The notes under the pieces are model-generated. The model saw only the letters and a list, made by a program, of their open reading frames with translations, was not told the DNA's origin and searched no databases. Both the position numbers and the translations under genes were made by a program. DNA of 64,000 bases from Zygnema circumcarinatum SAG 698-1b (Eukaryota > Plantae > Zygnematophyceae), in contig CM074815.1 of NCBI GenBank assembly GCA_037447605.1, forward strand, positions 1,054,001 through 1,118,000, in the 5' to 3' direction. Shown piece by piece: positions 24,126 through 52,609 of the stretch (positions are counted from its first letter, which is position 1; every line of letters begins with the position of its first letter).

Positions 24126-24740
24126 TTCCACACTGGATTAAGTCTCCTTTATCAGCATGAGAGCAGTGCTCAACTTATTTACTTGGCTTGGACCCGTCAG
24201 TCAGATCAACTTTTGTCAATGGACGTATCTTAAGTTGAAGGGCCGTCTTGTGCGAGACTCATCACTTGAAGATGAGATGTTTCCTATCGCAATAGTGAAA
24301 GGAATCCCTTTGCATGGATGAGGTCATGCATGAGTCATGTATGGCGGGCATGTGGCACGTGCGAATGGGACATCATTCGAGTGTTCAACGCGGTTTCACA
24401 ACTACACTTTTCATGGACGGACATAAAGTTTCCATACGCGAACAATATTTGACATAAGACTCTTGAGTGAAACATGCAAGCAAAGAGTTTCAAGTGACAA
24501 AAACCTGTTATGGCCTATCGGCGATCGCTTTCAAGGAAGGGGGTATGAGCTTTATTTCCGCAGTAAGCGACCACGCGCACAGCCCACACACCCTCCCTCG
24601 CTGTGGACCGCGTCCGTCGCCGCTTGTGTGGGGCTCTGGACGCGTCGGTGGCGGGGGTCAGCAGGCAGGGGTCTTTTCGGGTTAGCATTGTTTGAAGTTT
24701 ACATTTGGAAAAAAAACATTAACATCCCTCACCTCGCCTT

Positions 24741-24857
24741 GGTGCGATCATACCTAGGCTACTACGCCGGATCCCATCAGAACTCCGGAACTCAGCGCCT
24801 GTGGGCCGAAATAGTACTGGGATGGGTGACCTCCCGGGAAGTCCCGGTGTCGCACCC
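24741..24857 (+). rRNA. 5S rRNA-derived copy A, near full length (gene or pseudogene)
   Basis: GGTGCGATCATACC...CCGGATCCCATCAGAACTCCG...AGTACTGGGATGGGTGACCTCCCGGGAAGTCCCGGTGTCGCACCC. Helix I (GGTGCGA/TCGCACC) can pair. A TTTT tract follows at about +8. Confidence 0.88.
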
Positions 24858-24924
24858 ATCAACCTTTTGCTGTTCCACTTTCCAACCGCGATCGATCAAG
24901 AACCAAGGATCATTTTCCGCTCAG

Positions 24925-25380
24925 GAAAGTGACGTGGCGGCGCTTGAGTGGCCGCAGCACGTGCACGTCGTCGTCGTGGAACGCGGCCGCGAGGTGGGTT
25001 TGTCCTGAAGCGGTTTTTCTATCTGCCCGCAAAGTTGAGGCAGGACGGCAGGCGGCGGCGGTCGCGGCGGGCCAAGGTTCCACAGTTCGGACCAGTGGAT
25101 CGGCAACCATTGGACAACCATTGGATGGCAATGGTTGGACGTCTACTGGTTGGCAACCAGTCGAATGGTTGTTTCGGTCCGCAACCACTGGTTGGCAACC
25201 AGTCGACTGGTTTGGAACCAGTGGATGCCACTGGTTGGCAACCAGTCGAATGGTTGTTTCGGTCCGCAACCACCGGTTGCCAACAAGTCGACTGGTTTGT
25301 CTAATGGTCCGATCTGTGCAAGGTTCCGAAGGTCGGGAACCAATCAGCGCGCGCCCGCCCGCGATACTTCATGCCGATAC
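24925..25380 (-). repeat. Repeat module homologous to 48365-48575 / 49295-49503, interrupted by a CAACCA(C/G)TGGTTG-type palindromic array (about 25100-25300)
   Basis: Shared blocks GTCGTCGTGGAACG..CCGCGAG, TTGTCCTGAAGC.GTTTTT, TCTGCCCGCAAAGT and CCAATCAGCGC.CGCCC.CCCGCGATA.TTCA.GCC, in inverted orientation relative to 48-49 kb. Confidence 0.75.
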
Positions 25381-27008: not shown

Positions 27009-28120
27009 TCTTGACAACAAAGAGAGAAATCAGCCAATGGAGAATAGACATACGTGTCTGTCTATGGCGGAAACACGACCAATCAGACAGAGCTGAGCTT
27101 TGAAACATTCCTGACAGCAGCCAGACTCATTCTGGCTCTAGCACTACTTTTCAAGATTAATGTATCAACTGTGCAGTAATGTGCCTTGATGCGGAATTAG
27201 CAAAAAATGGAGCTCAGTGTCTGCAAGCACGTAATTACTTTCGAATGCAGCCCCTGAACGTTCTCAAGGTGCAGGTGCAGGAATGGATTGAGCACTTAGT
27301 GGCGTCGGGGGACAAAACAGACTTCCCTCGAAATGTATTTTCTCTCACAGTCGTGAATGGGGGGCCATACACAATTGTGATTTGTAATGCTTTAGCTCAC
27401 CCGTTCAACATACATATCCTCTCAATTTCTCAGTAATGGATTCAGCTGAACTTGATCTTCATGCTCTTTGTTGGAAACAATTCAGAAGTTGTTCCATGTG
27501 TACCTGCTGTTGAGAAAGTACATCACCGAGCACAAGATGGCTTACGAACGAGAGTGCCCAATTGCTGGTGTGCAGATTATGAAGGCACCAGCATTAGTGG
27601 AGCATTAGTGGAGCACCAGCAACAAGAGGGCTCTTCGATCCATACTGTTGCCGGAGAGTGTTGCTAGTACTACCAAACCTGGGAGAAGACGACGCAGAAA
27701 GGGAACGGAAGCCTCCGGCCGTGGAATTGCGAGGCAAACGCCGCGAATGACGTTGCCGCGAAAGGTAGGGAAAGGAGGGGACGAGAAGGGAGGGGGGAGG
27801 TGGCGGCTGCAGTGGCGGCGTCCGTCGCCTCCTGCAAACCCTAAAAAATTGTCGACGGTGACGCGCGTACGGTAACCGCCGTGGGCCACGGCGGACGCTT
27901 CAAATCGTGCACGTGGCGATCGCTGATTGGAAAACGGCGTTTTGATGGAACTCGTCATTTTATCTACAAAACGGCGTCCTACGTGGACCGTAATGAGCTC
28001 GTTACGAAACGGGCTGATGGAGACTGGCCCTGAGTCCATTCGCTTCAGCACCAGCGAAAGTTTGCGTCGAGCGATGCGAGCTCGATCGCGTGTTGGAAAG
28101 TGGAAAAGCAAAAGGTTGGT

Positions 28121-28216
28121 GGGTGCGACACCGGGACTTCCCGGGAGGTCACCCATCCCAGTACTATTCCGGCCCACAGGCGCTTAGCTGCGGAGCTCTG
28201 ATGGGATCCGACGTAG
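28121..28216 (-). pseudogene. 5S rRNA-derived copy B, lacking the 5' ~20 nt
   Basis: Reverse complement reads CTACGTCGGATCCCATCAGAGCTCCGCAGCTAAGCGCCTGTGGGCCGG...GTCGCACCC. It shares ~40 bp of 3' flank with copies A and C. Confidence 0.88.
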
Positions 28217-28529
28217 GTTAAGGCATTCTAATTACAATTATAAATTTAAAATCCTCGAGGAACCAATGGGCCGCCGAAAAAAGTACTGCCGTTTGTACCG
28301 TACGGTCCTTTCACCGAATGTGGCCGGCAGGAGCGGGACCGTTCGATCTAGGTGGAACCGGATCGATGAAACATCAGCCGTCGGATGGCCGACAGCGGCG
28401 CGGGGGGTCGCAGCCGTACGATACGAGGCGATTTCGACGCACGAGGCTACTGTATATACATACGGTGGTGGTGAGAGCGGCACAGCTTGGAGAGCTTCAA
28501 AATGAATGGAGGGGGGGGAAGGGGGGGAA

Positions 28530-28700
28530 GGAAATTTCATTGAACTCACAATGGCGAGGCCATTAAATGTACATAGACAAAAGCATGATGTGGAACCACG
28601 AGGGACTGGTCGCAAAGGTCCGAAACACCTTAGAACGAAGCTAAGAGCTGAAAACTACGCCTAGGCACAACAACGCAGCCCTAGAAGCAGCCGCGATGGA
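28530..28700 (+). repeat. Dispersed module (CATTGAACTC.C.ATGGCGAGGCCAT.AAATGTACA...)
   Basis: Related sequence at about 33130-33290, 47105-47150, 47765-47810, 48720-48765 and 50615-50740. Confidence 0.7.
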
Positions 28701-29365: not shown

Positions 29366-30930
29366 CTAAACGCCTACATCTGTCACTTTACAGCTTTGGT
29401 CTTTCACTGTTTGCGAAGTGATGTCTATGTCCACATCGCAGCGCGCGTTCACCTGTGACAGCCAAACAGGCGCAACAACAACAAGGACGAGTCAGAATCT
29501 GAGGGAGGGGAGGGAGNNNNNNNNNNGGAGGGAGGGAGGGAGGGAGGGAGGGAAAGAGAGAGGCAGCACCAACCTTAACTGTTGGCGATGATATGCCCCA
29601 AATGTCAGCGGCTCCCTTAACCATAATCCGGCTCTGCACGAAGCAACAGTTTGGCTGTCAGTCCCCGACCCACATCATCAAAGCACCACTCGCGCTATTC
29701 AGTCATTGCAGCAGCAACTGCCAATAAAGCTTTTCTTTGAAACCTGCAGTTTCGCCAGGCCAATGAGGAATCGAACTCTCAGAAGATGGCTGAAGCATAA
29801 AGGGGTGACCGACACCTACCACGAGTGAGATGGTTCCGCCGAGGAACGACGACAGGAAATCAGAAGCCAAGGGGCCCGAGATTTGGGCATCCATGGCCAG
29901 GTCACCAAGCGTGCTGTACGTCTCTCGAGACCCCACTTTGAACGCCGGCAGCTGCATGCCAACATGGCACGAACATACATGAGATCATCATGTCCATACA
30001 TATAAGCAACGATCAAGCAAACGCGCCTTTTCGACTTTTTATAATAGATGAATACTTACAGTGCTATTGCCAATAGAATGATCCTTGTAGAAGATGGCAG
30101 CTCGCACGCTCTTAACATTCAACGAGTACTTGTTCCGATTCTCCACAGTGACGTTGTATGAGAGGACTCCCATGACCCTGACGAGTGTGGCCGAGTCATT
30201 ATTGAATTGGCTTAGGAGGTCCTGCAGGCTGCTGTCCGTGACGGGCGAGGAGACGTTCAGAGAGCGAATTCCTGTAACGTTGACGGAAACGGTAGGCTCC
30301 TGCCAGGTCACAGGGAGCCCCTTCTTTCAGCCCATGCAAAAAAAAACGTTTTTTTTTCTGGACTGATGCATCGGAACTGAGCTAGGGAGTGGGCGAAGGA
30401 GAGGGAGAGGAACAGGGAGCGGAAGCGGGAGAGGTAACCTGAGAGGGAGCGGAACGGGAGAGGGAGAGGGAGAGGAAGAGGGAGGGGGAGAGGGAGTGGG
30501 AGCGGGAGAGGAGGAAATGGAAAGGACGAGAGTGAGAGGAAAAGATAGAGTGAGAGGGGGGACGGGGTAAGCCTCTTGACCTTGGGCTTGAGCACGAGGT
30601 AGAGCACAAGCACAGTGATTCCCAGCGTCAAAAGCAGCAGCACCAGGAAGCAGCAGAGCCAGCAGCACACGCGCCCCGGAGTACACCTCCGCCGCCGCTC
30701 CTGCGCCATCCATGCATGCATCCATGGCAGAGTGAGCCATGGCCATCCCATGCCATGCCCTGAGGGCATGCGTGCAGGCATAAACTGCAAAGCCAAAGGT
30801 CTGAACAAAGGCAAGGAAAAAGCTGAGTCAGGCGACGGGAGGCAGCGGCGGAACCCACCTCTTGCACTGCTACTGTAGTGTACGGCCCGGCATTGCCCTT
30901 GGAAGGGGGATAGGGCGGGGGGTTCTCCAT
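29366..30930 (-). CDS. NDR1/HIN1-like (LEA_2 domain) membrane protein, multi-exon
   Basis: MENPPPYPPS...; Cys-rich TM segment CCWLCCFLVLLLLTLGITVLVLYLVLKPK; LSYNVTVENRNKYSLNVKSVRAAIFY; LPAFKVGSRE; DIWGISSPTVK; final exon VNARCDVDIDITSQTVKDQSC, stop TAG at 29366-29368. Confidence 0.82.
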
Positions 30931-31374
30931 CAAGATCTAAACAAACCACCCTTATCGCGAACGCTGCAGCCTTAGCCTTGCTTCTTTTTTGAGGTCTGAA
31001 AGGCCTCTTAAGTCGTCTCCGAATTGTGCAGCAGAGCGCGCGGAAGAGCTGTGAGCGCAGCGCCAATCGCCACCCTCCCTCCCTTCTATGTTATTTATTC
31101 TCCCTCCCTCTCTCCCTCTCTCCCTCTCTCCCTCTCCCTCTCTCCCTCTCTCTCTGTGCGACGCGCCCCGTGTTGGAGGGAGGACCTCCCCAGCGCGCCC
31201 ACGCGGCGACGGGGCCTTCCCGGAAGGTGCGCGGAACGCGCACTGTACGGCAGGGGAGAACAGTTGACCATGACACGTGGACCGGTCACTATGTGCCACA
31301 TGACCCAAAGTCGGCCAGGATGGACCCGGCCGACGGCGGGCGTCAAACCGGGAGGGGTGCGCCGGGCCGGCAAG

Positions 31375-31725
31375 GTGCCCGGGCGGGATTTTTTGTCGTA
31401 TCTGGATTGGACAGGTGGCGATAACGGACAAGGACGGCGGGACGGACGGCGGACCCCGACCGCGGTCGCGGTCGCCGTTTCGTACGGCGAATCCGGGCGC
31501 GAGGCTTATACAAGGTGACTTTCACTGTCCCTAAAGAAACAAAAACATGCGCATGGTTGTTGCTGCTGGCTGGCATCCATGCATGCATGCGGTGGGCCTT
31601 AATCGGCCCGCGGGTCATCCACAAGACGACAAACTGGCTCCGATGACGCGCTCGCTCGCTGTACGGCAAATCCGTCGTATGAGCCTGTCCAATTAAAATA
31701 CGACAAAGTCCCCCGCCCGATGCCT
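31375..31725. mobile_element. Possible MITE with degenerate ~35-bp inverted termini
   Basis: GGGCGGG....TTGTCGTAT....TTGGACAGG (about 31381-31417) versus CCTGTCCAA....ATACGACAA....CCCGCCC (about 31684-31719). No TSD seen. Confidence 0.45.
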
Positions 31726-32194
31726 AGCTGGCGAACGCTTCAGTCTGATCAGACATGGCCGATTTTATGACACGTGGCACAACATGAATGGCCCACACGG
31801 CGGTCATTGGCATTATTTTGTACGGCCGAATTCGTATTTTGTACGAATGGTTCGAAGAAGAAGTTTCTACGAAGCAGTCCCACGGTCAACCGAGTCACAA
31901 CCGCGACGCGACCGCCTGCCCGTCCGTATATGTCGGCCGTACACAAGTGTACACCACACCGCGATTCCCGGAAAGTGCTGCGGTCTGCTGCCGACACCTG
32001 GCGGCCACTCCACTCCGCACGTATGAGGATTATCCCAAAGCCAGAGGAAAAGCCCACGCGTTTGTCGCGACAAGCCACGCGGCAGTCAACGGGACTCGGA
32101 AGTCCCTACCCTGTACGGCCAGTGGCCGCGTGGCAACAAGGCGCGAATCTATGCGCGGCCGGTGACACGTGCGGGGACCGCGGCGGCGCGTTCC

Positions 32195-32426
32195 GATTGG
32201 TCGAGGACGGAGGGGCGGTGCCGTACGAGGACGGCCGTCACGGTTACCGCCGGTCGGTTACCAGCGGTCGGTTACTAGCGGTCGCGATAACCGAGGGTTC
32301 AGTCAGTGTACGGCACACTTTATCGTCTTTGGATTGTGATACGATATGACTCCCGATACGATACATTACAATACGATACAGGGGTCCGTGTGCGACGCCC
32401 GACATTCCGTTGATCCGATCGAATAG
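32195..32426 (-). repeat. Dispersed module, inverted homolog of 46270-46455
   Basis: Shared CTATTCGATCGGATC, GTCGCACACGG, AAGTGTGCCGTACACTG, GTGACGGCCGTCCTCGTACG and CCAATCGGAA. Confidence 0.8.
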
Positions 32427-32451
32427 AAGTGGCGCGAGGGATGATGATGTC

Positions 32452-32723
32452 GAGGGAGAGGGATGGTGGGAGAGGTAGATGTCAACCTTGGGTAGATCGA
32501 GAGTGCTGAGCAAGCGAACCACGAGCTTGGGGGGAAGCACCGGATAGGAGTATGCGAGGGTGTCTCGAACAAAGGAGAACGGCAGGGGGTGGTCGACAAT
32601 CACATGGTAGGGGGCAGCGCGGTGCAGGGCAAGGAGGCGATCAGATGTTTCCTTGGCTTCGTGTTCAATTAGTGTGTGTACAAATATCTGAAGGAGGGGG
32701 GTGATTCGAAGGCAGAAATGGTC
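32452..32723 (-). pseudogene. Captured MED23 fragment (copy of 43436-43707: most of an exon plus ~35 bp of the next intron)
   Basis: Translates DHFCLRITPLLQIFVHTLIEHEAKETSDRLL...LDLPKVDIYLSHH versus gene DHFCLRIIPLLQIFVHRLIEHEAMETADRLL...LDLSKVCIYLSHH. About 18 substitutions in 272 bp by eye. Confidence 0.93.
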
Positions 32724-32765
32724 ATATGTAACAGTGGAGCGTACAAGTAGTGTGACCATCCATAA

Positions 32766-33110
32766 CTTCAATTTGGGCATGCTTGAAATTCTTTCTAGTA
32801 AAAAAGTGCGTTACACATCCTCAAACAAATGCTCCCTCTGCACTGTGCTTCGACGTGTATACATGTTCCTGTCCTTACTATTTGATGTCTGGAAAATCAA
32901 ACAGAAAAACATCTCTGCACCTCAAGGGTGGTTTGACAAGAGACACAGAAACGAGTGGAATTAACGGTCCGCGGTTCAACAGCCCTAAAGCTACCAAAGC
33001 ACGGGCAGAGCGTTGCAAAAGAGTCAGAATTATTAAGTTCACTGCTTACCTTAAAAACGAGATGCCAGAAACAGGCGGCGACAATCATAGTCGGAAGCAC
33101 CACATTGGTG
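32766..33110 (-). pseudogene. Captured fragment of the fatty-acid-hydroxylase gene (copy of 51502-51846: exon 3 end plus intron)
   Basis: VLPTMIVAACFWHLVFK followed by ~285 bp of colinear intron sequence in both places. Confidence 0.93.
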
Positions 33111-33443
33111 GAAGGCTTAATGCAATTATAGATGTGGCATTGGTCTCACGATGGCGATGCCATCAATGTATATGGACAAAATCACCAGGGGAACCACAAG
33201 GAACTGGTCACAAAGGACCTAAAGTCACAAGAAAAGAGCTACGCCTAAGTTCAACAACGCAGCCGTCGAAGCAGCCACGAGTTAGGCTTCTAGTAACTTT
33301 TCATCGCATCGAATATGGACACTAAAGTGGAACATTATGGCATACCAACATCAACATGCGAAGTGGCCGAATTGAGAAAGGTGGGAAAATGATCCTCGGT
33401 TCTTGATCGATCGCGGCTGGAAGGTGCAAAAGCAAAAGTTCGT

Positions 33444-33550
33444 GGGTGCGACACCGGGACTTCCCGGGAGATCACCCAACCCAGTATTACTCCGGCCCAC
33501 AGGCGCTAAGCCGCGGAGTTCTGATGGAATCCGGCGTAGTAGCCTAGGTA
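33444..33550 (-). pseudogene. 5S rRNA-derived copy C, lacking the 5' ~11 nt
   Basis: Reverse complement reads TACCTAGGCTACTACGCCGGATTCCATCAGAACTCCGCGGCTTAGCGCCTGTGGGCCGG...GTCGCACCC. It shares ~60 bp of 3' flank with copy A (...CGCGATCGATCAAGAACC.AGGATCATTTTCC). Confidence 0.88.
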
Positions 33551-33993
33551 AACACGATTACTTAAACAGCTGTGAAAGTCTAATAACCATAATCTAGCGC
33601 GAAACGGCCGTAAAGCGAGTTGAAGACGCGCGTGTTGTGTTCGTGGGGCATTGGGCGCTCGCTCGTGGTCGGTTAGCGGCATGGATGGATGGATGGATGG
33701 ATTGATGGATTGAGGGATGGATGGCCATGCGCAGCAGCGACATGGGTCCATTTTCACTCTAAGTGCGAGCATGCGGATGGGCGCGGCAGCGCCGCGACGG
33801 AGGCCGGCCCCGACGTATGGCATCGGCATCGTCCCCCCTGTGTACGATATATTGGACATCGAATCGATATCTCGATACGCAGGAGCTCCCCTGTCTCCTC
33901 CCTTCCCGAGCTCCAGCTGGCCATGGCGCGCTTGCCTGCCTGCACCGCAGTTGGGCGCTCTCTATGGTAGGGCGAGAGAGGGAGGTAGCGGGC

Positions 33994-36900
33994 ATGGCTG
34001 CCCCTGGAGAGTCGTTGCTCACTCTTCTGCAGCGGTACTTGGGGGTGAGCAACATCTCCGTTTGTTTGACATGGTTTTGATGTAGTTGCTGTGTTTAGAC
34101 TTATCATGGAGTTCTTGATCCAAAGAAATTATGAATGCATGTGATTCATTCAAAATTTAAAATAATGCTTGGACGTAGAATTTCGTTGAGCCCCTTTCTG
34201 GTGTTGCTTAGCAAACAAACACTCGTTTGAAAAAACTATTGGCTTTGCAAAAGACCTCACATTCTGAAATTTTAATGAGTACGAGTGTTATGTACTCTTT
34301 TTAATAGCTTTATTTATTGAACCTCTTATGAAATTCTTAAAAGCCTCCCATGGTTACGAAGCAATCACTATAGTAAGAGATCCGGGAGTTGATGATAGCT
34401 GTGCTTTACTCTGCTGCAGGAAACACGCAGCGGGTCTGAGCGAAGGACATCTGCAGCTCTTTTACGGTATTTCCTTATGTCATTTGTTAGAAATTTTGTG
34501 GAATTCGATATGAATTAAGATTTGAACAACTTAGTGACATTCTAACATTGCTGTCTCGCATTGAGCCCATGACCTCTGCATCCTCTGGAGAATCATAATT
34601 AGGTCTTCACGACAATTGAGGTGTTTCTTTCCAGTTAGAGGCTGTAGTAATGGCGTGTGTTTTTCTAAACTGAACATGTTTATTCACTTTTGCATGACAT
34701 CCTCTTATACTCATCTATCACAGACAAGACAAGGCCCCCAAGCCTGGGAAAGTTCTCACAAAGAAGCGCATCATATCTCCAAAAGATGGAGAGCTTCCAA
34801 CTGACCTGGAAAACTTTATAAGCAATGCCCCTGTAAGTACTTATATGGCCCGAAATCATCAAATACTGCTAACTTCAACCAACTTTCACAGAACCATACT
34901 GCCCCATTGCAAAGGTGGATTGGCTTGAATATGTTGTGGATAATTTTCCTAGGGCACTTTACGCCCGGGGATGAATGCAAACCCATTGGCTACATTTAAG
35001 GTACAAGGTAGCTGCACGCACACAAAAAACATCAAGCTTACAGCCACCATGCCACTTTCAATGACTCGTCAGTGTGAAACTTGTTTCGAATAAATGGAAA
35101 GTGCATCTTTTGCCTGTTGATGCCCTCATAGGCAAGCTGGAGAGGGTTATATTATATGTGCAAATTCGGCGTTTTAAAGTGAACCCATGGAGGGAATTTT
35201 AATCAGTGAGGTTGCAAAACGTTGCAGATTAGAATATCCCTCTGAGAAACAGAAGATTAAGTCACTCATATTCAGACAAGATTTTTCTTACATGGCCCTT
35301 GCCCCCGTGTCCGCAGGATGAGTTTGTAGATGTGGCTACCTAATCTGATGATTACGTAGACACTCTTCACTCCCTCCTTGCTAAAGTCCCAAGCTGAATA
35401 ACCTCAAACATTTCAATTTCACTCTTTCCAATCTCCTGTAAAGGAAGGAACACGTGTCTGTTGCCTTCGGGTGCTGTTTTTTTCCTCTGAAAGTCCGGAT
35501 TTTCTCATGCTGCAATTGATAAGGTGTTAGTAGAAAGCTCAAGAAAGTTCAGGCACCTTCAACACAAGGTGGGTCAACTTGTTTTTGGGCTTTCCAGGAT
35601 GGTAGTGAACTTCGCCGAGCGGTGGAGCCGACTATGGCTTCTCTGCTCCTTCAATGTGGCTCCAATAGTGTTCAGGTGTGGTTTACTGCAGTCCGCATTC
35701 TTAAATTTCTGCATTCTGCGAGTTGCCTTGAAACTCCATCATATGATTTCGCCCTTATTGTGCCTCTGCTGCCAGGTCGACTTCCTCCTTCGAGCCATAC
35801 AACTTCTCCTTCTCAAGGGATGCTTTCTTTGGGATTTGTTCATTCCCCTACTCGTAAAAAGCGCAGGCAATTTCGATCCCATTGCTCGCAGACTGCCACC
35901 TTCCCACAGCTCATCTGGGGGTCTCTTGGCTCTCACAAGGGCTGGAAATTCCGGTCCTTTGGAAGGCGGCCCTTCTGCTGCTGCCACTCCTCAGTTGACC
36001 TCTCCGTTGCGACCTACAGGTTCTATGGCTACAACGGAAGTCCCCCCCGGAACAGGCGGAGAGGAGACTCCAATAGAGGAGAAGAGCAGCAGACCTCCAC
36101 CACTCTGGCTAAGGTCTTTGGTCTGCAGAGTTTTTCTCATGGCTTTGGAATCATCCTCCCTCAAAGCTCTCACATGTGCAGAGATTCTTGCGTTGGTAGT
36201 TGCATGGTTGAGGAGTGGGGGCGACGATACCATCGATGAAACTAATCAAGTTGCGGATTCTGTGATAACTAGTGGGTCGGCAGTCAAACAAGAGCAGGGG
36301 CAAGTGGTAGAGCGATTGGAGAATGGGAGTGGAGTGGGAGTTCTTGGCAAGGCTGGAAGGCGATGGGAGAGAGTGGGTGATGTGTGGGAGGAGGAGGAGG
36401 ACTTTGAGGGGGGTCCTCCATGGCGAGAGAGGTGTGTGGCAGTGCTGCAGGCAATGGTGGAGCCTTGCAGGACTCTCGTGCCATGGCATGCTCTTCTGTA
36501 TGGGCCCGCACAGGCAAGTCAGCATACTGCCTTTCCTCTCGGGCAAACGATTCATTCGGGTTTGAATTGTTGTTTAAGTTGTTTAGGTTGGTTAGGTTTT
36601 TAGATTTGAATCGTTGTTTAGATGCTCTAGTAAGATTGGTTTCTTTGCTAAACTACGACTTTTGTTAGACAAGAATATCGTCTGCAGACACTAGTGTTTA
36701 CGTATGGATGTTTTCCATTTACTCCATCCTTAAAAGGCCTGTCTTTGCATTGCAAGTGTCATTTCTGCTGATACACAGAGTGAAAGTTGCATGACAAGTA
36801 CTTCTTGTTAGAGGAGACTTGCAAGAGTCAACTCATACTTTTCCAAGAGTACAAACCATAGGAGTATCATCCGAGTAACTCCTTCCGCTCTTTAGAGTTG

Positions 36901-39161
36901 CTACTTACAACTCAGAGCTGAGACCCCACCCAACCTCTTCCCAACCTTTCCTTCCACTACTGTCGATAAAAAGGCATCCATCCCCCCCCTCCCCTCTGCC
37001 TGCTGGTTTGCGCCGTGCAGCTACCGTCAGACTGTCTTCCCTCAGACGATGCCGCCTCCTCCTCCTCCTCCTCCTCCTCCTCCTCCTCCTCCTTCTTCCT
37101 AGAGGTGGAGTCCCGCCGGCGGCGCATGCAGCGGTGCATGGAGGCGGCGGACGGGCACCTCCGCGGGCCGACCTTCGCCACGCTCCGCCTCGCGCCGCTC
37201 ACCTACAAAGGGGCCGCGGGGGAGCCCCTGCACTGGAAGGTGCTGGCCTGGGCTTTGTCGAACTATGTACGCAGGATGTATGTATGTATGTATGTATGTA
37301 CGCATTTTGTAGCACTTTCATGAAGGGAGGAAGTGTTAAGGATTCAGTTTCGGTGTTCTCTATAGTTAGCTTCGAGCTAGGATGGCTGTAACTCCTGAAC
37401 CCGAAACCTTGAAACCCTAAACCCTCAATCCTGAACCCTGAACCCCACACCCTGTATTCTAAACTTTACACCCTGAACCCTAAACCCTGGACTCTAAGCC
37501 TTAACCCCGAATCCTAAACAGTGAACCCCAAACACTCAATCCTGTAAACTTTAAACCCTGAACCCTGAACCCTTAACCCTAAACCATCAAACCCCGAGCC
37601 CTAAACCTTGTAACCGAAACCCGAAACCTAAACCCTAAACCCTGCCCCCCCCCCCCCCCAGGCCGTCCCCCCTGGCAGCCTCGCGTGGCGGCGCGGCCTG
37701 CGGTCCCTGGGCCACGCGCTGCGGTGCGGGCCGAGGGCGGAGTGGTGGGCGGGGGCGCTGCGGCACCCCCCGCGCTGGGAGGGCCACCCGCACACGGCCA
37801 ACCTGCCGCCCGCCCTCTCCCCCAACCCGGTGTTCCCGCACGCCATGCTGGTGGAGGCCGTCGTGGAACGCATCGTGGAGCTCATGCGGCCGAATGTAGC
37901 AGGTACTGTCTGTCTATCTATCTTCACAGTCTATTGGAAAGTGGGGAAAACACAGTGGGAGCAATAAACTTTAAACCACCACTTTTTTCTACTCCTGTTT
38001 CTGTGGAGAATCGCCATCTCTTCTCGCGTTAGCTTGTTCTGATGCACGCATTCTCAAACGTGCATGGCAGCATCTCCCGAGCAGAGCGAGACGGCGGTTG
38101 AAGCAGGACGGTGGCAGGAGTGGCTGACCTTCGCGGACATGTTCTACTACGCGGTGCGCCTCGGGCTGCTCGACTTTCAGGACCTCGTCGACGCGCTCGC
38201 GGAGCGGTTCAGGGCGGAGGGCCGCCCGCGGTCCAACCACGTCACGTGGCTACTCGCACAGGTCTCAAGGGCTGAGGCCACAGCCATGGCGCTGCAGAAC
38301 GGATCGCCGCAGAGGGTGGGTGGGTGGGCACCTGCCGTTTGGAAGCACGCTTGAGTGTATGGCTCAATGGAGGGGGAGAGGGGGAGAGGGGGAGAGAGGG
38401 AGAGGGGGCGAGGGGGGAGGGGGAGGAGGAGGGGAGGGGGAGGAGGGGAGGGGGGAGGGGGGAGGAGGGGTAGGGGGGCGAGGGGGGGCGAGGGGGGGCG
38501 AGGGGGGGAAGGTGTGGGAGGGGGGGAAGGGGGGGAGGGTTGGCGAGGGGGGGCGAGGGGGGGCGAGGGGAGAGGAGGGAGAGAGGGAGAAAGAGAGAGG
38601 GTGGGGAGGGACGAGGGAAGGGGGAAGGGGAAGGGGAGGGGGGGGGGTTGTGTGGGAAACCGGGGGATGGAGGAGGGGGGTGGGGGAAGGGGGTGAAGGG
38701 ATAAGTGAAGGGAGGATATGGGAAGCAGGATGTGATGGAGGATGCGAGAGCAGATGGATTGAGGGAGGGGGGAGGGTGTCTGCTGTGACTGTTTTTTTAT
38801 GTACTACATCAGAACTAAACACATGGAGAGAAGGCTGAGATTCCCAATGTTGGGTGTGTTGCAATGTGCAGCTGCAGAGCACCTTGCAGAAGATCCTTTG
38901 GTTCCATACAGAGAGTCGGGGAGAGGAGGGGCAGCCCCCCTCTGCATGGAATCTCCTTTTGGAGTTCATGGGCAGCTGCCAGATTCTCCGCCTTTGGAGT
39001 CTGAACAAGCGGCTGTTGGAGGAGCAGGTGGGAGTGAACGACTACAACGTCAAGAGCAAGCAGCTCAACGAGTGGTGGCAGACCACTGTCAAAGGTGGCT
39101 GCCTACCCACGTAGAGTGGATAGGAGAGAGGGTGGGAAAGAGGGGAGAGAGCGAGAGAGAG

Positions 39162-39197
<36 letters not shown>

Positions 39198-42100
39198 AGA
39201 GAGGGTACATGGGGAGTATGCTGCAGCATCTGCTACCGTTGTTGGGTGAAACCCAAGAGATGTAATTGCATAGTTGAGAGAGGCTGGTGGTTGGTGGTTG
39301 CAGAGCGCGGATTGGACTATAGCAGTTTGGATGAGAAGACGATGGGAATGGTGTGGGTGCTCTCCCACACCATCAGTCAGCCCGTGTGTGAAACGGTTCT
39401 CTCTTGGATGCGCTCACAGGTGAGGGAGAGGTTTGAGGTGGCAGAAATAGACCTGACCCGTGGCTCACCATTGGAATTCGACACTCCTAAAAGGAGTCAC
39501 TTGTAAGTGCCTTAGAATTTGTTTTTTATGGAGTGATGGAGGAGAGTGGGTTTATACTATGGCAGGGTACAGAAGAGATATCAGTGGGACAACCTCCAGT
39601 GAAGATGCTCCGTTTGCGGGAGACGAAACCACTACCAATGAACTTTTTGGCAGGACTCTCCTTCCAAGTGGCTCAGCGCCTTGTTGCCAGCATTGAGGAT
39701 ATCATTGCCATGGAGAAGGTCAGACTACCATGCTCTCAAAGCCAATATCTCCCTCGCGTGTGACAAAAAAACGCTCACAAAAAACGTGCACATGAAACTC
39801 TCCGAAAGCGGCATGATGGTAAAAGACGGTAAAATCATGAGGGTAAACGAACGTAGGAGCCCCTGAAACGCAGGGAAAGAGTAGAAAAGCATAGGAGATT
39901 CTGGTGAGTTCTGAGACATAGGAGGAGCAGGAGGTTGGATGATGTGCAGGTGATCCCCAGTGCATGCATGGTGGAAACCTATGCTCGCCTCATGCTGGTC
40001 GCCCCCCATGTCATGCACAGTCAGCAGACACTGCACCCGCCGGCCCATGCAGCTCTCAACAGTGCGAGACCTCCTCTCCTGCAGGTGAACTGAACGGAAC
40101 GGAACTAAACTGTCTGATTAACTGTCGAAACTAGGAAATTAGACAAACTGGATAGTGAGGAAATTGAACGAGAAGCTAGGGAAAACTACAACGTAAGAAA
40201 GTGAACTAGAAAGTAGGACCAAACTAGGACCGAACTAGGAAAGGAAAGAAACAAAACTTGCTGCTCCTGCTGCTCTCTTATTTCGATCAGTTAGGGCCTT
40301 AGCCCATAGATGGATGTGGAATTTGCCTCATGCGTCTGCTTGCGTGGAAATAGTAGGGGGCTGATAAACAAGAAGGGGGAAGCTGCAGAATTTTTTGCAG
40401 GGCTATGAGCCCCGCCAGTCTCGGAGCGGAGTACCGCTTTTGCTTCTCGAGCTGATCAACTATCGCCTTCTCCCCTTCTTCAGGTGAAGGCCGCTAGTAG
40501 CTGCTGTTCTGTGTGCCTTTCTATGTGAACTGAATACCTTTCTGCTATCCTTGCCGTACTATTCGAGAAATACTACCACGTGTGGGGGAGTCTTTCCTTC
40601 AATCGGGATGCAGTCCTTTGTTCATGAGTGGCAGTTCCCAATTTGAAAATTTCCTATGGCGATGGAGAGAGGGAGGGCAGATATCAGGGAAAGATTCGAG
40701 GACTCATTTTGGACTTAGCGAAGATTTTGATCACAGTAAAGAAGGAGCGTGGAGAGCATCGGCTCTACCGATTGGCTGAAAACACAGCCATCAATCTCAT
40801 CCTCTCTCTGCAGGAGGTGATGCTGGTGAAGCTGGAAGGGAAGGTGATCACTCCTCCCTTTTTCTCAATTTGCCCTCCCTTTCCACACTATCTTTCCTAT
40901 GTTCTCATCCACTCTCCCTCCTTCCTTAACTACTTCTCTCGTTTCTGCTCTGCTTTGGCCATTTAGTGTTCCACCTCGGCTTATTTTTAGGTTTCACCTC
41001 GTCTGTCAGAGAGAGAGAAAGAGATTGATTAATTTAGGGTTTATGGTGGAGAGTGTCTGCAGGGTGTCTGCACAGACCTCTCCGAAACTCTGAACCGAGT
41101 GATGGTGATGAATCTGGCTGTTACGATAAAGACAAGAGGGATACATGAGTACGAGCAGTACGCCATAGTGCATGCAGCCATGGAGCAGATTTTGGGGTCA
41201 AGCTCACACCGCTGGTCTGAAAAAACCCTCCGCCATTTCCCCCAAATACTTAGAGACATTTTGGCGAACAGGCCGGACAGGAAGAGCCAAGTCCTCGCCA
41301 GGTGGCAGCAGGTGGGAAAATCCCACTAACACATGGTCTTGAATGTGAAATTCCACACCTATATTTGGACTGCCCCCTCTCTTTCTTCTTTCGGTTTTTT
41401 CAAAAGAGCTTTTTGGGTTTTATCAAAAGGAGCTTTTTTTGTTTTTTCTAATGAACTTCTTTATTTTTCTCGAAAGAACTTTCGTGGGTTTTTCCAAACG
41501 AACATTTTGAAGAGGGCTTAGAGCCTTTCCGGAGTATATGTGCAGGTGGAGGCAGCGATGGTCCAGCAAGTGAACCACCTTCTTTTGCAGAACCGCTCCT
41601 ACTGCAGTTCATTTGCTGCCTCTCTGCCCTCTGAGCAGCGACCCTTCCTTTGCGCCGCCGCATGGATGCTGGTCTCCTCCCATCAGCCCAATACGCTCGA
41701 TCTGACTAACCTGGTCAGCTCCCTTTCTGACGGAATTTTTTGATAAATATACAGTCACCACATACATATGCCGTGTTTCAAGAGTGATGTATCATGTCTT
41801 CATTTAGCTTCCTTGAGATTTTCTGGACAGATTTCTGATCTTTTCGGGTCCTTTTTCCCTGCTGCAGAGTTTGGTTATGCAAGATTTCTCCCCCGAGGAA
41901 GTAACCCAGAATGCCTACGCGTTAGTCGACGTTCTCCTTCATAATGTGCAGGTACATCCTCAAACACACTCCCACCCTGCTTCAGATGTGGGAGCTCATT
42001 CCGAGACTCGGTTCTGACTACTGGAGGGAGTTGTGGCTGTATCCTCTTTCCTCTTCTTAATCTTCAGCAATTGATTGGTTATAGCTTCCCTATATACTCC

Positions 42101-45100
42101 CTACATAGGCTCCTTCTAGGCTCCGGACTCCCATAGACTCCTTATAGCCTCCCTATGTAAGCTCTCGATAGCCTCCCTATAAGCTTCTTCAATAGCCTCC
42201 CTACAGGCTCCCTATACACACTTCTTAACTAGGCTTCTTTTAGGTTCCTTCTAGGCTCCCTATTGGCTCCTTGCTTCCCTTACACCCCCCCCCTCCCTCC
42301 NNNNNNNNNNCCCTCCCTCCCTCCCTCCCTCCCTCCCTCTCCCTCTCGTGCAGGTGCAGGTGGAGAGCAAGGCCGCCCTGGGCGCCCTGCTGGTCGCTGC
42401 CACGCAGGGCCTGACCGCCTTCGTGTGGGGGCCCGAGGCGCTGCCCTTCGACATCGTCATGCTCGCACTCATCGACCGCGACGACACGCCCTCCTTCAGC
42501 CTGCGAGTCGTGGTCAGTTGCTTCAATGTGGAAATCCCACCTCTGTTTGCGTTTATTAAGAGAGGGGAGGTGCATTATACAGCGGTCAGTGCTTGTATGG
42601 ATGGATGCATGCTTGCATGGATGGGTGGATGAATGCGTGGGTGGATGCATCGTTTTGTATTCGTGCATGAATAGAGATGTAAAGATATGGGTGCCTGGAT
42701 GATGGACGGATGCACGCATCATGAATAACGCTGGACAGATAAACGTCTAGACGAATGAACGAACGAACGTATGGATGACTCACCTTATAGAAACACAACA
42801 TAAACATCACCCATCAACAACCCAACCCCTAAACCAATCCCTTCCTTTGCCTGCTGCTTGCCTGCCTTCTTTCCTGCCTGCTTCCCTGCCTGCCTGCTTC
42901 CCTCCAGGTAGGTCTGGTTTTGGACCGGGTGGAGGTTCGGCAGCGCGCACAGCCGTACTGCGCTGCGAGGGGGCAGCAGCGGTCCGCGGAGCATTGGGCT
43001 GCGCCCGTACCCGCCCCCGCGCCGGAGGGCGCACAGGCGCTGGGCCCACACCTCGCGGGCCGGGACGGGTGGGCGCACACCCGAGACACGTTTGGAAGGG
43101 GGGGCAAGCAAGAACAAGGAAGGGGGTCTAAGGGGCAGTGGGATAGTGGGGGATAGAAGGGCTGTAATCGAAGGAAACTGTTTAGTTAGTGGGTTTTGTG
43201 GGTTCAATTGTGGGGTTTGATATGGGGAGTTTTGGGAGTTAAGTGAGTTGAGAGGTTATGTTTGATGGAAGCTTGTTATGGTAATGGTGAAGATTTTTGT
43301 AACTTTTTTCAAAATTGTGAATAGTCATGTTGGCTGTGAACCTGGACTCTTAACGGAGTAAAAGGCATTCTTCTAATGAGGACATTTTTCTGTTTTTTTT
43401 TTGTTTTTTTTTTTTGCAGATATCCCATATTCTTCGACCATTTCTGCCTTCGAATCATCCCCCTCCTTCAGATATTTGTGCACAGACTAATTGAACACGA
43501 AGCCATGGAAACAGCTGATCGCCTTCTTGCCTTGTACTGCACTGCCCCCTACCATGTGATTGTCTACCACCCCCTGCCGTTCTCCTTTGTTCGAGACACC
43601 CTCGCATACTTCTATCCGGTGCTTCCCCCCAAGCTCGTGATTCGCTTGCTCAGCACTCTCGATCTCTCCAAGGTTTGCATCTACCTCTCCCACCATCTCT
43701 CTCCCTCTCCGTTGCTTCCCACCCATATTCATTTCAGAAACAGAGTCTTCATCGAGCTTGGTGTTTTGTATATTTTGCAATGCTTACGAATAATCCTGCG
43801 ACTTTATGGCTGCTGGGTGTTTGCTCTAAGTGGCTACTAGTCCGCAAGCTTGAAACCGAAATTCTGTTCAGTTTGTATATCCACATTGCTCACGGAGAGG
43901 ACCCTTCCCTTCCTCTCTTACGCAGATTCCGTTCTCTATCTCATTTCTCAGCCATATGGGCAGTCCTGGCAAGCTTCCTGGGGCCGACTACTTCTTCAGT
44001 CTCCTTACCACTCTCGCACTGCAAGTCATCCCCCCTCTCTCTCCCCCCTCCCGCTCCTCTATGACCTCTCCCGAGAGCCCTCCCTCTGAGCCTGATGCTG
44101 CAAGCCCTTCTCCGAGCCCTCTGGGAGTTAGCAAACCGTTCTGTGAACACATGGACACTGCTCCCTATGTCCACCTTCTCCTAGAAACCGCTGCGGTAGA
44201 ACTCCTCTCCCTCCCTCTCCCTCTCGTCGACGGAGTGAAGACTACCGTCCCCTACCAAGTCGTAAAAATGCTCCTCGCAGCAGCAACGCTTGTACCTTCT
44301 CCGAATCACATACATTCCAGCAGTTCTGCTCCCTCTCCCACTATTCCTCCCTCTTCCTCTCCCACCCCTGGAAGTGCAGGAACAGCCGCAGCAGCGGCCC
44401 TTTTTGCGGACCTACCACCACCTACCGCTCCCTCCGGGGGGGGTTCAGGAAGGAAGAGTGCTCCCTCTCCCCCACTAATGGCACAGGCTTGTGGAGTGCT
44501 GCTAGCACAGCTTCCCACCCCCTTCCATACAGCCCTATATGCTGAGGCTGCAAAAGTTTTCCTGGCCTGCCCGTGGCTGGTAGACCCCAACCGCAGCAAG
44601 GAAGAGGCAGCGCTGCTGTGGGAGCGAGTGGTAGTAGATCCGACTTGGGCAGCAGGAAATGACATGTGCTCAGAGATAGGTAATACCCTCTCTGCAATAT
44701 GGGGACGAGAGGTAGCTCAGTTTCACTAGATTTGAGGCTATAATGTACCCGAGAGATCAACTTCTTGTGTATGATTACATGGGGATGGTGCAGGAAATCT
44801 GATTGCACTGCTCCATGCCGCCATGGCTGCTCTTCCCTTTGAGTGGCTGGAGGGAGCGCTCGCAATAGTGACAGCCCAGAGGCCTCTCCGTACGGCCGTA
44901 CAGCTCCGGCTGTGCTTCCACCTGCTGGGGCCCCTGGTTCCGCGCACAGCGGTTTACCGGCCCCTCTTTGTGAAGGCAAGCTGCCACTTTCTGACCCTCT
45001 GTACTAGCAAATCAGCAGAATTTATTTGCTAGATGTGATGGATGTGGTGAGGTAACGGTGAACATTGCAAACATGCGACATTCACTCATTAGTGTGCGAA

Positions 45101-45669
45101 AAGTTTTGGCTCATAGGATGTGTTTTATGGTCCCGTTGAGAGGCTCATGCAGGAAGGACCTGGAATTTGTCCACAATGGTTTTGTTCGATGTATTGACAT
45201 GAGATGCTGCACGTGGCTGCAGACTCTCTCTCTTCTCTTTTCGGCTCTCGCTGATGTGTTTGGAGTGGATTCCGACGCAGCGATTACTGGACCAGCCACG
45301 CTCATCTCAGACCTTGTCGACTTCATGTGAGCATCTCCTCATCGCCCTCAAATCGACCAAACAGACCAAACCAAGAGTGAATAGACTTTGACTCTGACTG
45401 ACTCTCCAGTTTGCGGTTAACCTCTCTAATCAAAAGCATTATTGGCATTATTATCCCTCCCCTCCTCCCCCTCTTGCAGGCACCATGCAGTGATGTTGGA
45501 GGCAGGCCCGGGCAGTAGTCGGCCGAGGGCAGAAACTCTCCTTGCGTGTTCTGAGGGAGCGGGTCGCCTCCGCCCCGACCTGCGCCTCTTGCTGCGCCAC
45601 CTCACCGCTGACCCCCACGTGTCCCTCTACGCGGCGAGCAGCGCCCGGCCGGGGAAGACCCCCTCGTAG
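33994..45669 (+). CDS. MED23: Mediator of RNA polymerase II transcription subunit 23, many exons
   Basis: Exons match recalled plant MED23 motifs: LLQRYLG, WQEWLTFADMFYY, RSNHVTWLLAQ, FSPEEVTQNAYALVDVLLH, PFDIVMLALIDRDD, YHPLPFSFVRDTLAYFY, LLAQLPTPFH, AALPFEWLEG, TLSLLFSALADVFG, HHAVMLEA...LRPDLRLLLRHL. The start codon assignment is less certain. Confidence 0.9.
37395..37644. repeat. Degenerate interstitial telomere-like array (CCCTAAA / CCCTGAA variants) in a MED23 intron
   Basis: About 30 degenerate AAACCCT-type heptamers ending AAACCCTAAACCCT just before the intron acceptor. Confidence 0.85.
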
Positions 45670-45705
45670 TGGGCGACCGCTGGGGGGGGGCGCGTGGCAG
45701 ATGGG

Positions 45706-45771
45706 GGGTTCAGGGTTTTAGGGTTTTAGGGTTTGAGGGTTTGAGGATTTGAGGATTTGAGGGTTTGAGGG
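45706..45771. repeat. Degenerate telomere-like array, G-strand (TTTAGGG / TTTGAGG variants)
   Basis: GGGTTCAGGGTTTTAGGGTTTTAGGGTTTGAGGG... about 37 bp after the MED23 stop codon. Confidence 0.8.
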
Positions 45772-46479
45772 CTTTTCACGATGAGGCGTTGCTCTCATGC
45801 ATGCGAGTGTTGAATAAGCTGTGTTCTATATTTGCGGGAGTGGAAGTAGGTAGCTGTTCAAAGGTAGACAGTTTTGGGAAAGGAAAGGAGAGTAGTCGTA
45901 GAGATATGGCAGGCGATCATCATCCCAAGGATGGCGGCCGGCTTGCTCACTTTTTTTGCATGTAACTGTGTGTTCGGATTTCGAAAGCCAAAAAGTCAGT
46001 AAGCCGATTTTTTTTTTTTTTTTTTAAGCACTGCACAACGCGCCACTTTCGTTAGGGCAGGTCAGTCATGGCCAAACATGTCCAAATCGATATCGTACGC
46101 TTGCCGGACGTACTGTATTTCGCATTGGCTAGGTACAGTACGCATTTCGATACGGCTGGATTAGGCGGAGCCGCGGATCCCGACCCGAAATTCGTACACG
46201 AAAAAATGCCTTTTCGTAATACTGAATTCGGGAATTTCGAACGCTCCGCGCTAAGTCTGACCCCCCCTCCCCCTATTCGATCGGATCTAACGGGATGGCG
46301 TGGGTCGCACACGGTTCCCATGTATCGTATCGTATCGTCAATCAAATGAGCGTAATTTTGAAGTTGACAAGTGTGCCGTACACTGCGGTTGCCGGCCAGT
46401 AACTGTGACGGCCGTCCTCGTACGCGGCCACCCCCCCGTCCTCCGCCAATCGGAAGGTGCGACATTGCGACGGGACAAA

Positions 46480-46830
46480 ACAGAACAACGATTGCTAATG
46501 GTTCCAACCATACCATTGCCTGCGGTACGGTTGCAACCATTGGCAATGGTTTTCAATGTTGCCAACCAAACCATTGCCGCCGGCCCGAAACAACGATCGC
46601 CAACGGTTGGCAACCTTGGAATTGAAGGGCCGGTTGCCAACCATTGGCGATCGTTGTTTAGGGCCGGCGGCAATGGTTTGGTTGCCAATTGAAAACCATT
46701 GCCAATGGTTGCAACCATTGAATTCCAAGGGTTGCCAACGGGATTGCGATTGGGATTGCGACGGGACCGAAACAACCATTGCCACTGGTTCCAACCATTG
46801 CCGCCGGTCCCAAACAACCATTGCCGAAAG
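46480..46830. repeat. CAACCATTG/CAATGGTTG palindromic array containing a foldback (46531-46714, ~83-bp arms, 16-nt loop)
   Basis: 46531-46615 is a near-perfect reverse complement of 46632-46714. Confidence 0.9.
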
Positions 46831-46899
46831 GAGGCGTCCGATGTTCTTGCCTCGAAAGGGAAAAAGAAAAAAAATATTAAATGTTAACACGGTAGATGT

Positions 46900-47016
46900 G
46901 TTGCGATCATACCTGGGCTACTACGCCGGATTCCATCAGAATTCCGCAGCTAAGTGCCTGTGGGCCGGAATAGTCCTGGGATGGGTGACCTCCCGGGAAG
47001 TCCCGGTGTCGCACCC
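46900..47016 (+). rRNA. 5S rRNA-derived copy D (probable pseudogene)
   Basis: Full-length 5S pattern with several changes versus the in-window consensus (GGATTCC, AGAATTCC, TAAGTGCC, TAGTCCT, 5' GTTGCG). Followed by TTTT tracts. Confidence 0.85.
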
Positions 47017-50107: not shown

Positions 50108-52609
50108 ATGGAGCCTGCAGCGGTGGCTGTGAAGGAGGCGGACAATCTCGCTCTAGAAGCGGCGGAGGCGGCAGCGCGCGGGCGTGGAGAGACGCTTTCT
50201 GCGGAGGCCCTCGCGGCGTACGACTACAACGTGCCGAGGTCGCTCGTGGGCGCCATCGCCCGCTTCGCGAAGGAGCCCAGCGTCGCCATAATCCTCGCAG
50301 GAATCGTCGCCACTGTTGCGCTTCGCGTGGACCATCCATGGGGGCCGGCAGACGCTCTGGGTGAGGATGCAAGGTCTTAAAGTTCATTTCTGGCACTCCC
50401 TTAGACGTGAAATAGGGGCTTAAAGTCTTCGAAAATGGAGGATGGTTTTTTTTTTTTTTCTCAAATAAAACAAGTGAGGATTGTCGGATTTTTTTAAAGC
50501 AGCTCGGCTCCTTTAAATCTGAATGGATTAGGTTTGCGTAAGCCGCGAGGATCCTGCGTTGTGCTTTCTGAAAGCCTCCTTGTTGTGCTGTTTAACCCGA
50601 AAGAAAAAAGTGAAAATGATGTGGCATTGATTTCACGATGGCTAGGGCAATTAATGTACATGGAAAAAATTATCATGGGGAAACACCAGGAGGAGTGGTC
50701 ACAAAGGATCTAATGACAATAGAAAAAAGCTTTAACAAAGAGTGAAAGAAATATACAACCTTTTCTTTGCAGGATAGGTTTTTCCTGTATAGGCTTTCTT
50801 TCATGGTTAGGCGTGCACCGTGTGCTCATTTCGTGGATGAAAAATGAGCGAGGAAGCGGCTTAGTATCATAACCAGAATTCTGCTTATCATCAGAATGCT
50901 GCTTGTTATCTGGATGTGTGTGGCCATTGAAAATGTAATTTTAGAGCCTCTCTCTGCTGGTGAGGTGGTGCAGCAATCCCTGTTGTGGCGGTCTTTTGGC
51001 TTCTTCAAGAATGGTTTCTGCATTCGAAGCTACTTCACAATGAAAGCAATTGGTGAGCACTTTCGTGACTTTTTGTCAATGTCTGTTTCGTTGAACGTTA
51101 TAAAAAGTTTCTGGAATTGCACTGCTGATGACGGCACAGCCAGCAATTGGCAGCCGCTTCTCTGTACATTTCTGCAGCTCAGAGAAACTGGAATCTTAGG
51201 AAGCACTGCTCTTCATAAGTGGTCTTGTCAAGTATTAAGGACGATGCTTTTTCTGCGACCTATTTGTTTAGCTGTCACGGAAAAAACTGTTTCACTACAC
51301 GCTTGACAAAAGCAAAGGGAGAGAGAGAGAGAGAGAGAGATAGAGAACGAGAGAAGCTGGCGTGATACGCTTGACAGGATTTGGCTGGCTCTTTCTGTAA
51401 TGCTTTATAACTTCTTGTCTTTCAATATTTGAGTGCAGGTATGGGCGGCGAATTCACGAGAGGCATCACTTAGTGCCGTTCTACCACATATCAGTTGACA
51501 GCACCAATGTGGTTCTTCCGACTATGATTGTCGCCGCCTGTTTCTGGCATCTCGTTTTTAAGGTAAGTAGTGAACTTAATGATTCTGACTCTTTTGAAAC
51601 GCTCTGCTCGTGCTTTGGTAGCTTTAGGGCTGTTGAACCGTGGACCATTAATTCCACTCGGTTTCTGTGTCTCTCCTCAAACCGCCTTTAGGTGCAGAGA
51701 TTTTTTTCTGTTTGATTTTCCAGACTTCAAATGGTCAAGACAGGAACATGTATACACGTCGAAGCACAGTGCAGAGGGAGCATTTGCTTGAGGATGTGCA
51801 ACGCACTTTTTTACTAGAGAGAATTTCAAGCATGCCCAAATTGAAGACCTTTATGATGTTGCAATCAATGAAATATCTGTCATTTATGTTTTGCAGGGCT
51901 GTCCAGGACTCGCCCTAACGGCGACTCTGACCTATTATATAATGGGTCTCATTTATGAATGGACGCACTTCTTGTATGTTCCTCCTCCTACTCCCACTCT
52001 CCTGTGTTGGGTTGTACATATGCATGCATTGTTTTCTCTTAATCACAAAGGCCCTTGCTATTCTCTGCTGCCATTATTCATTCGAAATGTTTGTTGAGTG
52101 TAGATTGATGCACGACCTTTTGTTAAGTCGGTGAGACACTTGGAAGGTCCTGGTTGAGCATAGTATTGGCAAATCCCCAAGTCAAAATGACAGAAGCAGC
52201 TTGGGCATTCTGTATTTGGCGATCCAGTTTCGGCTTGGTGATTACTGTTAATTTAATTCTGTATGGTTGTCTCGAACGAATGCTGGAAGTTTTTCCGTTT
52301 TCAGACGATTGTCAGTAATTTCCACTGCTAAAGTTTCACATTCTCCGCCCCCGCCCCCCCCCCTTGTGCAGGGTGCATACACGTGTCCCAATGCGGAGCT
52401 GGCTGGCGCGAACCATCAAGAGGGCGCATGTCCGCCACCATTTACGTGACGAGCGGTTCTGGTTCAGCTTCACCTGCCCTCCCATAGACAATCTGTTCGG
52501 AACGGTGCCACCACAGGCAGTGGGAAGGCCTCAAATCGCAGATAAGGGGAAGGCTGCTGTTGCCTCAGGCCTAAAGGAGTTATCAAAGCATACCGTCGGG
52601 TGCAAGTGA
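50108..52609 (+). CDS. Fatty acid hydroxylase / sterol desaturase superfamily membrane protein, at least 5 exons (N-terminus may extend upstream)
   Basis: Spliced His boxes QEWFLHSKLLH, IHERHH, YEWTHFL-VH and HVRHH, plus FWFSFTCPPIDNLFGT. The frame is open upstream of the ATG at 50108. Confidence 0.85.

Follow-up and report, generated by a model that had tools for sequence, protein, structure and literature searches.

How do pieces of two neighboring genes come to lie inverted, side by side and among 5S rRNA repeat sequences, just upstream of one of the genes from which they derive? In the window, by which we mean the whole stretch of 64,000 nucleotides of Zygnema circumcarinatum SAG 698-1b analyzed here, this question is raised by a cassette that the earlier note had described as inverted and built of a truncated 5S and pieces of MED23 and of a hydroxylase gene, and had attributed to local multi-template capture by a 5S-bearing element. 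We find that this anatomy is borne out by self-BLAST and alignments, and that the local multi-template copying stands while the 5S-bearing element does not. The patch is, in our judgment, probably complex filler DNA: within an old relic of 5S repeats, two nearby templates would have been copied, either during break repair or through template switching in replication.

Self-BLAST of the window returns two inverted pairs that correspond to the gene pieces, 32766-33110 with 51846-51502 (93.9% over 346 columns, E 8e-150) and 32452-32723 with 43707-43436 (93.4% over 272, E 4e-116), and pairwise alignments give both pieces sharp breakpoints. The MED23 piece (32452..32723, minus strand) copies one exon together with ~35 bp of intron on either side and differs from its donor by 18 substitutions and 0 indels, and the hydroxylase piece (32766..33110, minus strand) copies an exon end and 284 bp of intron with 19 substitutions and two one-base indels. 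Both pieces include intron, which agrees with the earlier claim of capture at the DNA level and points to a DNA (or unspliced) template from two local genes. A 42-bp linker (32724..32765) separates the pieces, and orphan linkers of 25 bp (32427..32451) and 20 bp (33111..33130) flank them, none of the three being assigned to a strand; a search of the window for linker sources yields only chance 8-11-mers. The complete patch thus measures 704 bp (32427-33130), and when read along the minus strand it runs from hydroxylase 51502 to 51846, through the linker, and on from MED23 43436 to 43707, with both templates taken in the same direction from the same stretch of chromosome.

To the left, the patch abuts a GC-rich CCAAT/GTAC module (32186..32426, minus strand) that is a diverged copy of a segment bordering the 5S array, 46273-46460 (71-83% identity by BLAST and alignment), with homology that stops exactly at 32426; the match, to 46460-46273, bears out the earlier report of this left module at 46270 as well. 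To the right lies the R repeat (33131..33280, plus strand), a module associated with 5S spacers whose high-copy core of ~35 bp occupies 33131-33166, followed by 103 bp of unique sequence, a 60-bp 3′ flank common to dispersed "type A" 5S only (33384..33444, minus strand; aligned to 24859-24918 and 28082-28122), and a 5S rRNA pseudogene (33445..33561, minus strand; Rfam RF00001). All of this occupies a 3.07-kb spacer between two divergent genes, a minus-strand gene (ATG 30929; GT at the exon end, 30858) and MED23 (ATG 33995), and the end of the 5S pseudogene is about 435-445 bp from the MED23 ATG, close to the ~450 bp first reported. The donors lie ~10-19 kb from the patch on the same scaffold, and the distances of 11 and 19 kb given previously hold there as minimum values only, because 10-N scaffold gaps are present at 42301, 47380 and 48576. 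Eight ORFs in the flanks give 0 Pfam matches to further hidden gene fragments. A 178-codon ATG ORF (32244-32780, minus strand) starts in hydroxylase-intron-derived sequence, crosses the linker, continues in frame through the MED23 exon copy and runs into the CCAAT module; this junction-crossing 178-aa ORF is probably due to chance, 160-190-aa ORFs being common in this GC-rich spacer.

Several features of the spacer itself were observed in passing. The first exon of MED23's divergent partner (30858-31089, minus strand) is very highly expressed, with a depth of ~1400 in RNA run X7, and a GA/CT-rich leader occupies 31090-31162 of the same minus-strand gene. The remaining spacer (31163-32451 and 33111-33995) is 54-60% GC with a CpG observed/expected ratio of 1.0-1.3, and by its composition looks like an unmethylated CpG island, though built largely of repeat modules.

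Both donors are colinear, expressed genes. The MED23 donor region (43436..43707, plus strand), identified by BLAST, alignment, Pfam and the outgroup discussed below, holds a 201-bp exon at 43472-43672 with its intron edges, and the hydroxylase donor region (51502..51846, plus strand), identified by BLAST, alignment, RNA contigs and Pfam, holds the last 61 bp of an exon (51502-51562) and the 284 bp of intron that follow it, up to 51846. This exon/intron border is marked by RNA contigs of the donor, whose ends fall precisely on position 33049 in patch coordinates and which continue beyond 33110 as donor sequence. Two ORFs, one at 41.1 kb and one at 43.4 kb, match colinear positions 690-751 and 949-1009 of the Pfam Med23 model, and an ORF at 52364-52606 matches FA_hydroxylase, all three matches (two Med23, one FA_hydroxylase) being below the gathering cut-off and mutually consistent.

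We then consider the reads. Logan contigs from three DNA runs (X1, X3 and X4, from three studies) placed on 30800-35300 match with 0 mismatches and at baseline depth. In all three runs, contigs lead from the left flank into the MED23 piece (31163-32578), span the MED23 piece, linker and hydroxylase piece (32564-32855), lie within the hydroxylase piece (32844-33001), and lead from R to the 5S (33195-33470) and from the 5S into the MED23 exons (33449-34983). The bridge from the hydroxylase piece into R (33068-33159), of the same quality, is seen in X1 only, because the X3/X4 contig listed at 32972-33110 is that of the donor. Depth gives a copy number of one for the patch, ~15 for the R core and hundreds for the 5S, and a protein search with the 177-aa junction ORF recovers a single distant MED23 ortholog and no second copy of the patch. 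A ~35-bp stretch of the R core (33160-33194) is unbridged by the short-read contigs shown, and the join there rests on the assembly; no Ns occur between 29527 and 42300. We conclude that the patch is real and single copy. X1, X3 and X4 all match perfectly and may be one strain, and are thus uninformative on polymorphism. Six further DNA runs labeled as the same organism (X15-X20) contain only 10-20% of the words present in 32100-33700, which is about what the 5S and R account for; they may derive from strains that lack the patch, or from low-coverage or targeted libraries.

The direction of copying is given by the MED23 exon. Between the copy and the donor exon there are 14 differences, 10 non-synonymous and 4 synonymous, close to the earlier count of about 11 and 4, and this ratio fits neutrality and argues that the patch is unconstrained. 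The outgroup is a Logan contig from a distant relative (L001:1-6010), colinear with 42378-45636, the 3′ third of MED23, at 40-80% amino-acid identity per exon. Its MED23 exon carries the donor residue at 8 of the 10 changed positions and the patch residue at none of the 10, and at the remaining two it differs from both; the donors are therefore original and the patch the copy. To judge from the sequences, the patch is a decaying copy, ~6-7% diverged and drifting without constraint. A test for faster evolution of the patch than of the donor introns is not significant (p = 0.13).

Changes in the MED23 piece are mostly AT to GC, with 8 T>C and 2 A>G versus 2 G>A and 0 C>T, which bears out the earlier remark on T>C and A>G changes in the MED23 copy; the directions are balanced in the hydroxylase piece. 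The CpG observed/expected ratio is 0.78 in the gene pieces and 1.0-1.3 in the surrounding spacer. By these measures the changes are unlike the C>T signature of decaying methylated repeats, as the earlier note had also argued.

We favor an origin of the patch by templated repair. The insert copies sequences that are still intact elsewhere, and is a mosaic of two nearby templates with three orphan linkers (20, 42 and 25 bp) bracketing the pieces. Because both donors are close, proximity-dependent repair or replication is indicated, rather than capture followed by transposition. A break or stalled fork would have arisen in the old 5S-module relic of the 3-kb region between the divergent genes, and the healing 3′ end would have copied 345 nt of the hydroxylase gene, then ~42 nt of other origin, then 272 nt of MED23. 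The copied end would then have been rejoined, the whole process being synthesis-dependent strand annealing with end joining, or else replicative template switching. The donor originals remained intact, and the patch has since drifted neutrally and would be passively transcribed, being beside or within the MED23 upstream transcription unit. What we infer here is that a break occurred, how it was mended and in which sequence the templates were used; the anatomy, the single-copy status, the direction of copying, the neutral decay, the lack of transposon hallmarks and the transcription are observed. A comparison of the donor flanks with the linkers gives 0 bp of junction microhomology.

Filler DNA at plant double-strand breaks, and gap patching by SDSA, are described (PMC2686159; PMC3445842), including the gap-patching work of Wicker et al. 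as cited in PMC3445842. The patch resembles plant filler DNA in that nearby sequences are copied in while the originals are kept, in its multi-template mosaic with short unexplained linkers, in the presence of gene fragments or pseudogenes at non-colinear positions, and in the absence of transposon ends. The pieces, at 272 and 345 bp, are larger than those of classic maize filler, which measure 8-131 bp (PMC2686159). Serial copying from spatially close templates, in either orientation and in one event, is also characteristic of FoSTeS/MMBIR templated insertions (PMC7954356, PMC5120786, PMC8421209), from which the patch differs in that no switch-point microhomology is seen between donor flanks and linkers. 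The closest known kind is complex filler DNA, or a templated insertion at a repaired break.

The 5S sequences are best taken together with the modules around them. The pseudogene scores 55.8 bits versus 82-85 for intact copies and passes the Rfam gathering score, and with ~11% substitutions and, by alignment, the 7-nt 5′ deletion that confirms the truncation first noted, it is not a functional 5S rRNA gene; the 5S of this genome is presumably plant-like. It lies >330 bp from the gene pieces and is ~89% identical to any other copy, versus ~94% for the gene pieces to their donors. The common part of the type-A family comprises only the 5S and ~75 nt of 3′ flank, and the 3′ flank of the patch 5S aligns to the copies at 24.7 and 28.1 kb and not to the array units at 46.9-47.7 kb. 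The flanking modules are 71-89% identical to their relatives, versus 94% for the gene pieces, and their order and orientation are shuffled at other loci. These more diverged flanks and the type-A 5S flank argue that the 5S relic predates the patch; the flanking modules look like an older 5S-repeat-unit relic into which the gene pieces arrived later.

Relatives of the R repeat are found at 28538-28696, 50618-50731 and 47108-47151, and also at 47.8 and 48.7 kb, and its core is a near-palindrome with an ATTGG motif, at ~15x single-copy depth in the DNA runs; it runs into many different flanks and is present in RNA contigs too. Three dispersed 5S copies (24740-24918, 28082-28236 and 33384-33561) have in common the ~75-nt 3′ flank, which ends in a T-run. 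Their 5′ truncations differ (0, ~18 and 7 nt) and the DNA upstream of each is unrelated, and such dispersed copies may have spread as short patches or retro-copies. The 5S array (46730-49505) contains 10-N gaps at 47380 and 48576 and a 408-bp stretch repeated at 100% (46972-47379 = 48586-48993), and is probably collapsed or incomplete. ARAGORN predicts a 98-nt tRNA-Ala(GGC) at 25157-25254, within a 70-bp tandem duplication (25145-25214 / 25230-25299, 96%). The intact 5S at 24740 lies ~300 bp upstream of this site, and the two may form a small cluster of pol III genes, unless the tRNA is a pseudo-tRNA.

Transposon capture is less likely than filler DNA as the source of the patch, and we consider it unlikely, with perhaps one chance in a handful. 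In that case an element, be it a Pack-MULE, a Helitron or one of no known class made of 5S-associated modules, would have taken the gene pieces from local DNA and would now be immobile and decayed. Intron-containing fragments of several genes are typical Pack-MULE or Helitron cargo, the patch likewise forms a transcribed chain of exon and intron fragments from different genes, and these are embedded between recurrent 5S-associated modules (CCAAT, R, 5S). Unlike such elements, the patch is without TIRs, target-site duplication or hairpin/CTRR, is present at single-copy depth and has immediate neighbors as donors; two donors within ~20 kb are unpredicted by capture and subsequent transposition, and the flanking modules, shuffled elsewhere, are far more diverged than the cargo they would have carried.

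Scans for the hallmarks of transposons give the same picture. Only low-complexity or chance inverted pairs are found in 30500-35000, rather than the TIR pair of a Pack-MULE; no target-site duplication, such as the 9-10-bp one of a Pack-MULE, surrounds the patch, the 13/16 direct match of 32410-32425 with 33300-33315 being at chance level; and no Helitron end (perfect-stem hairpin and CTRR-T) occurs on either strand of 31000-34100, in a scan that decayed ends could escape. The tRNA-Met primer-binding site of Cassandra is absent, matches with ≤2 mismatches being at chance level and elsewhere; within several kb there is one 5S only, with no second 5S or LTR pair to make a Cassandra TRIM; and no tRNA-derived SINE lies nearby, the sole tRNA being that at 25157. 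Decayed or unconventional transposon ends could have escaped these scans. In its dispersed 5S-like sequence away from the canonical array the locus recalls the Cassandra TRIM and 5S-derived SINEs (PMC10946416, PMC7215508), of which the latter are, according to one review, not known in plants (PMC10946416); it differs from them in lacking an LTR pair, a tRNA-Met primer-binding site and a SINE tail, and in that the 5S merely adjoins the gene pieces. Capture by a 5S-bearing element, as first proposed, is thus not supported, in view of the distance and divergence of the 5S and the lack of transposon ends, an LTR pair and extra copies.

The patch is transcribed. In RNA run X7, which shows GT..AG joints at 34043>34419 and 34465>34723 and a depth of ~0-1 in MED23 introns, patch-specific contigs cover 32580-32873 at depth 19, 32844-33001 at depth 25 and 33195-33771 at depth 17, compared with 4 in the left flank and 26-29 in the MED23 exons (26 in exons 1-3). 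Further runs of the same study and one other study hold 30-87% of the patch words, and three older RNA runs hold almost none. The contigs being strandless, the transcription unit therefore either reaches from ~32.58 kb as far as MED23 exon 1 or beyond, or is transcribed divergently from the promoter of MED23. A plus-strand transcript would contain the copies of both donor exons in antisense orientation, a minus-strand one in sense.

Inverted duplication of a target-gene fragment is, in the model of Allen et al. 2004, said to mark the birth of hairpin RNA or miRNA loci, and the PAI and CHS inverted repeats are examples in which an inverted gene-fragment duplication gives rise to hairpin RNA. 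The patch resembles such birth loci as a transcribed, inverted partial gene copy near its gene, and differs in that its arms are ~10 kb apart and that it is known here from strandless contigs. That it already works as a regulator, a plus-strand MED23 leader whose antisense exon copies would form double-stranded RNA and small RNAs tuning MED23 or the hydroxylase, seems to us doubtful, and more so than capture. X7 covers 32580-33001 and 33195-33771 at 17-25, near the 26 of MED23 exons 1-3, several RNA-type runs contain much of the patch (30-87% of its words), and stretches of 20-48 nt still match the donor exons perfectly. Against this, a minus-strand transcript, which strandless contigs would equally represent, would give sense copies, other RNA runs hold almost no patch, the exon-matching parts are unconserved under neutral decay, and a CpG ratio of 0.78 (1.0-1.3 in the flanks) with AT to GC changes is not the C>T decay of a long-term small-RNA or methylation target. 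The neutral decay, together with the lack of mutations of the methylation type, speaks against a small-RNA role of long standing.

A further step in this direction, on which we would place slightly less weight still, is that a plus-strand MED23 leader starting at ~32.5 kb would carry 144-272 nt of antisense MED23 exon, ~10 kb upstream of the genuine exon, and an antisense hydroxylase exon. The locus might then be a self-targeting hairpin or antisense module born by break repair and not by a transposon, and templated patches of 150-350 bp in 5S-repeat relics may be a routine source of such modules in this genome.

Two other ways of producing the arrangement by rearrangement fare worse than templated copying. 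A simple inverted segmental duplication with later deletions is ruled out by the order of the pieces, in which MED23 comes left of the hydroxylase. It is very improbable that the patch is what remains of a circularized or head-to-tail duplicated segment, such as an extrachromosomal circle, which spanned at least 8.4 kb (43436-51846, with the 5S array inside it), was reintegrated inverted and then mostly deleted. The joining of donor 43436 to donor 51846 has the head-to-tail topology of such a circle, and CCAAT module, MED23 piece, hydroxylase piece and 5S, all inverted, form a circular permutation of the donor region; four blocks, however, would match in order by chance about 1 time in 50, and two of them belong to multi-copy families. 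The 3′ flank of the patch 5S is moreover of the dispersed type A and not of the donor-region array type, the module and 5S are at 71-89% versus 94% for the gene pieces, and the R copy is in the wrong orientation. Least credible is an assembly artefact in which reads of the two genes were chimerically joined, which the N gaps of the scaffold and the unbridged R core (33160-33194) might suggest. Contigs from three separate DNA studies, and from one RNA run as well, oppose it: with 0 mismatches and at single-copy depth they show the patch-specific variants and all gene-piece junctions, and the stretch 29527-42300 is free of Ns.

Read as filler DNA, the patch is a clean and datable natural case of multi-template gap patching, with the donors next door and the direction of copying fixed by an outgroup. 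From such cases one can see how gene fragments move with no transposon involved, and how a gene's own upstream transcribed region can receive inverted, partial copies of that gene, the proposed raw material for antisense and hairpin regulators.
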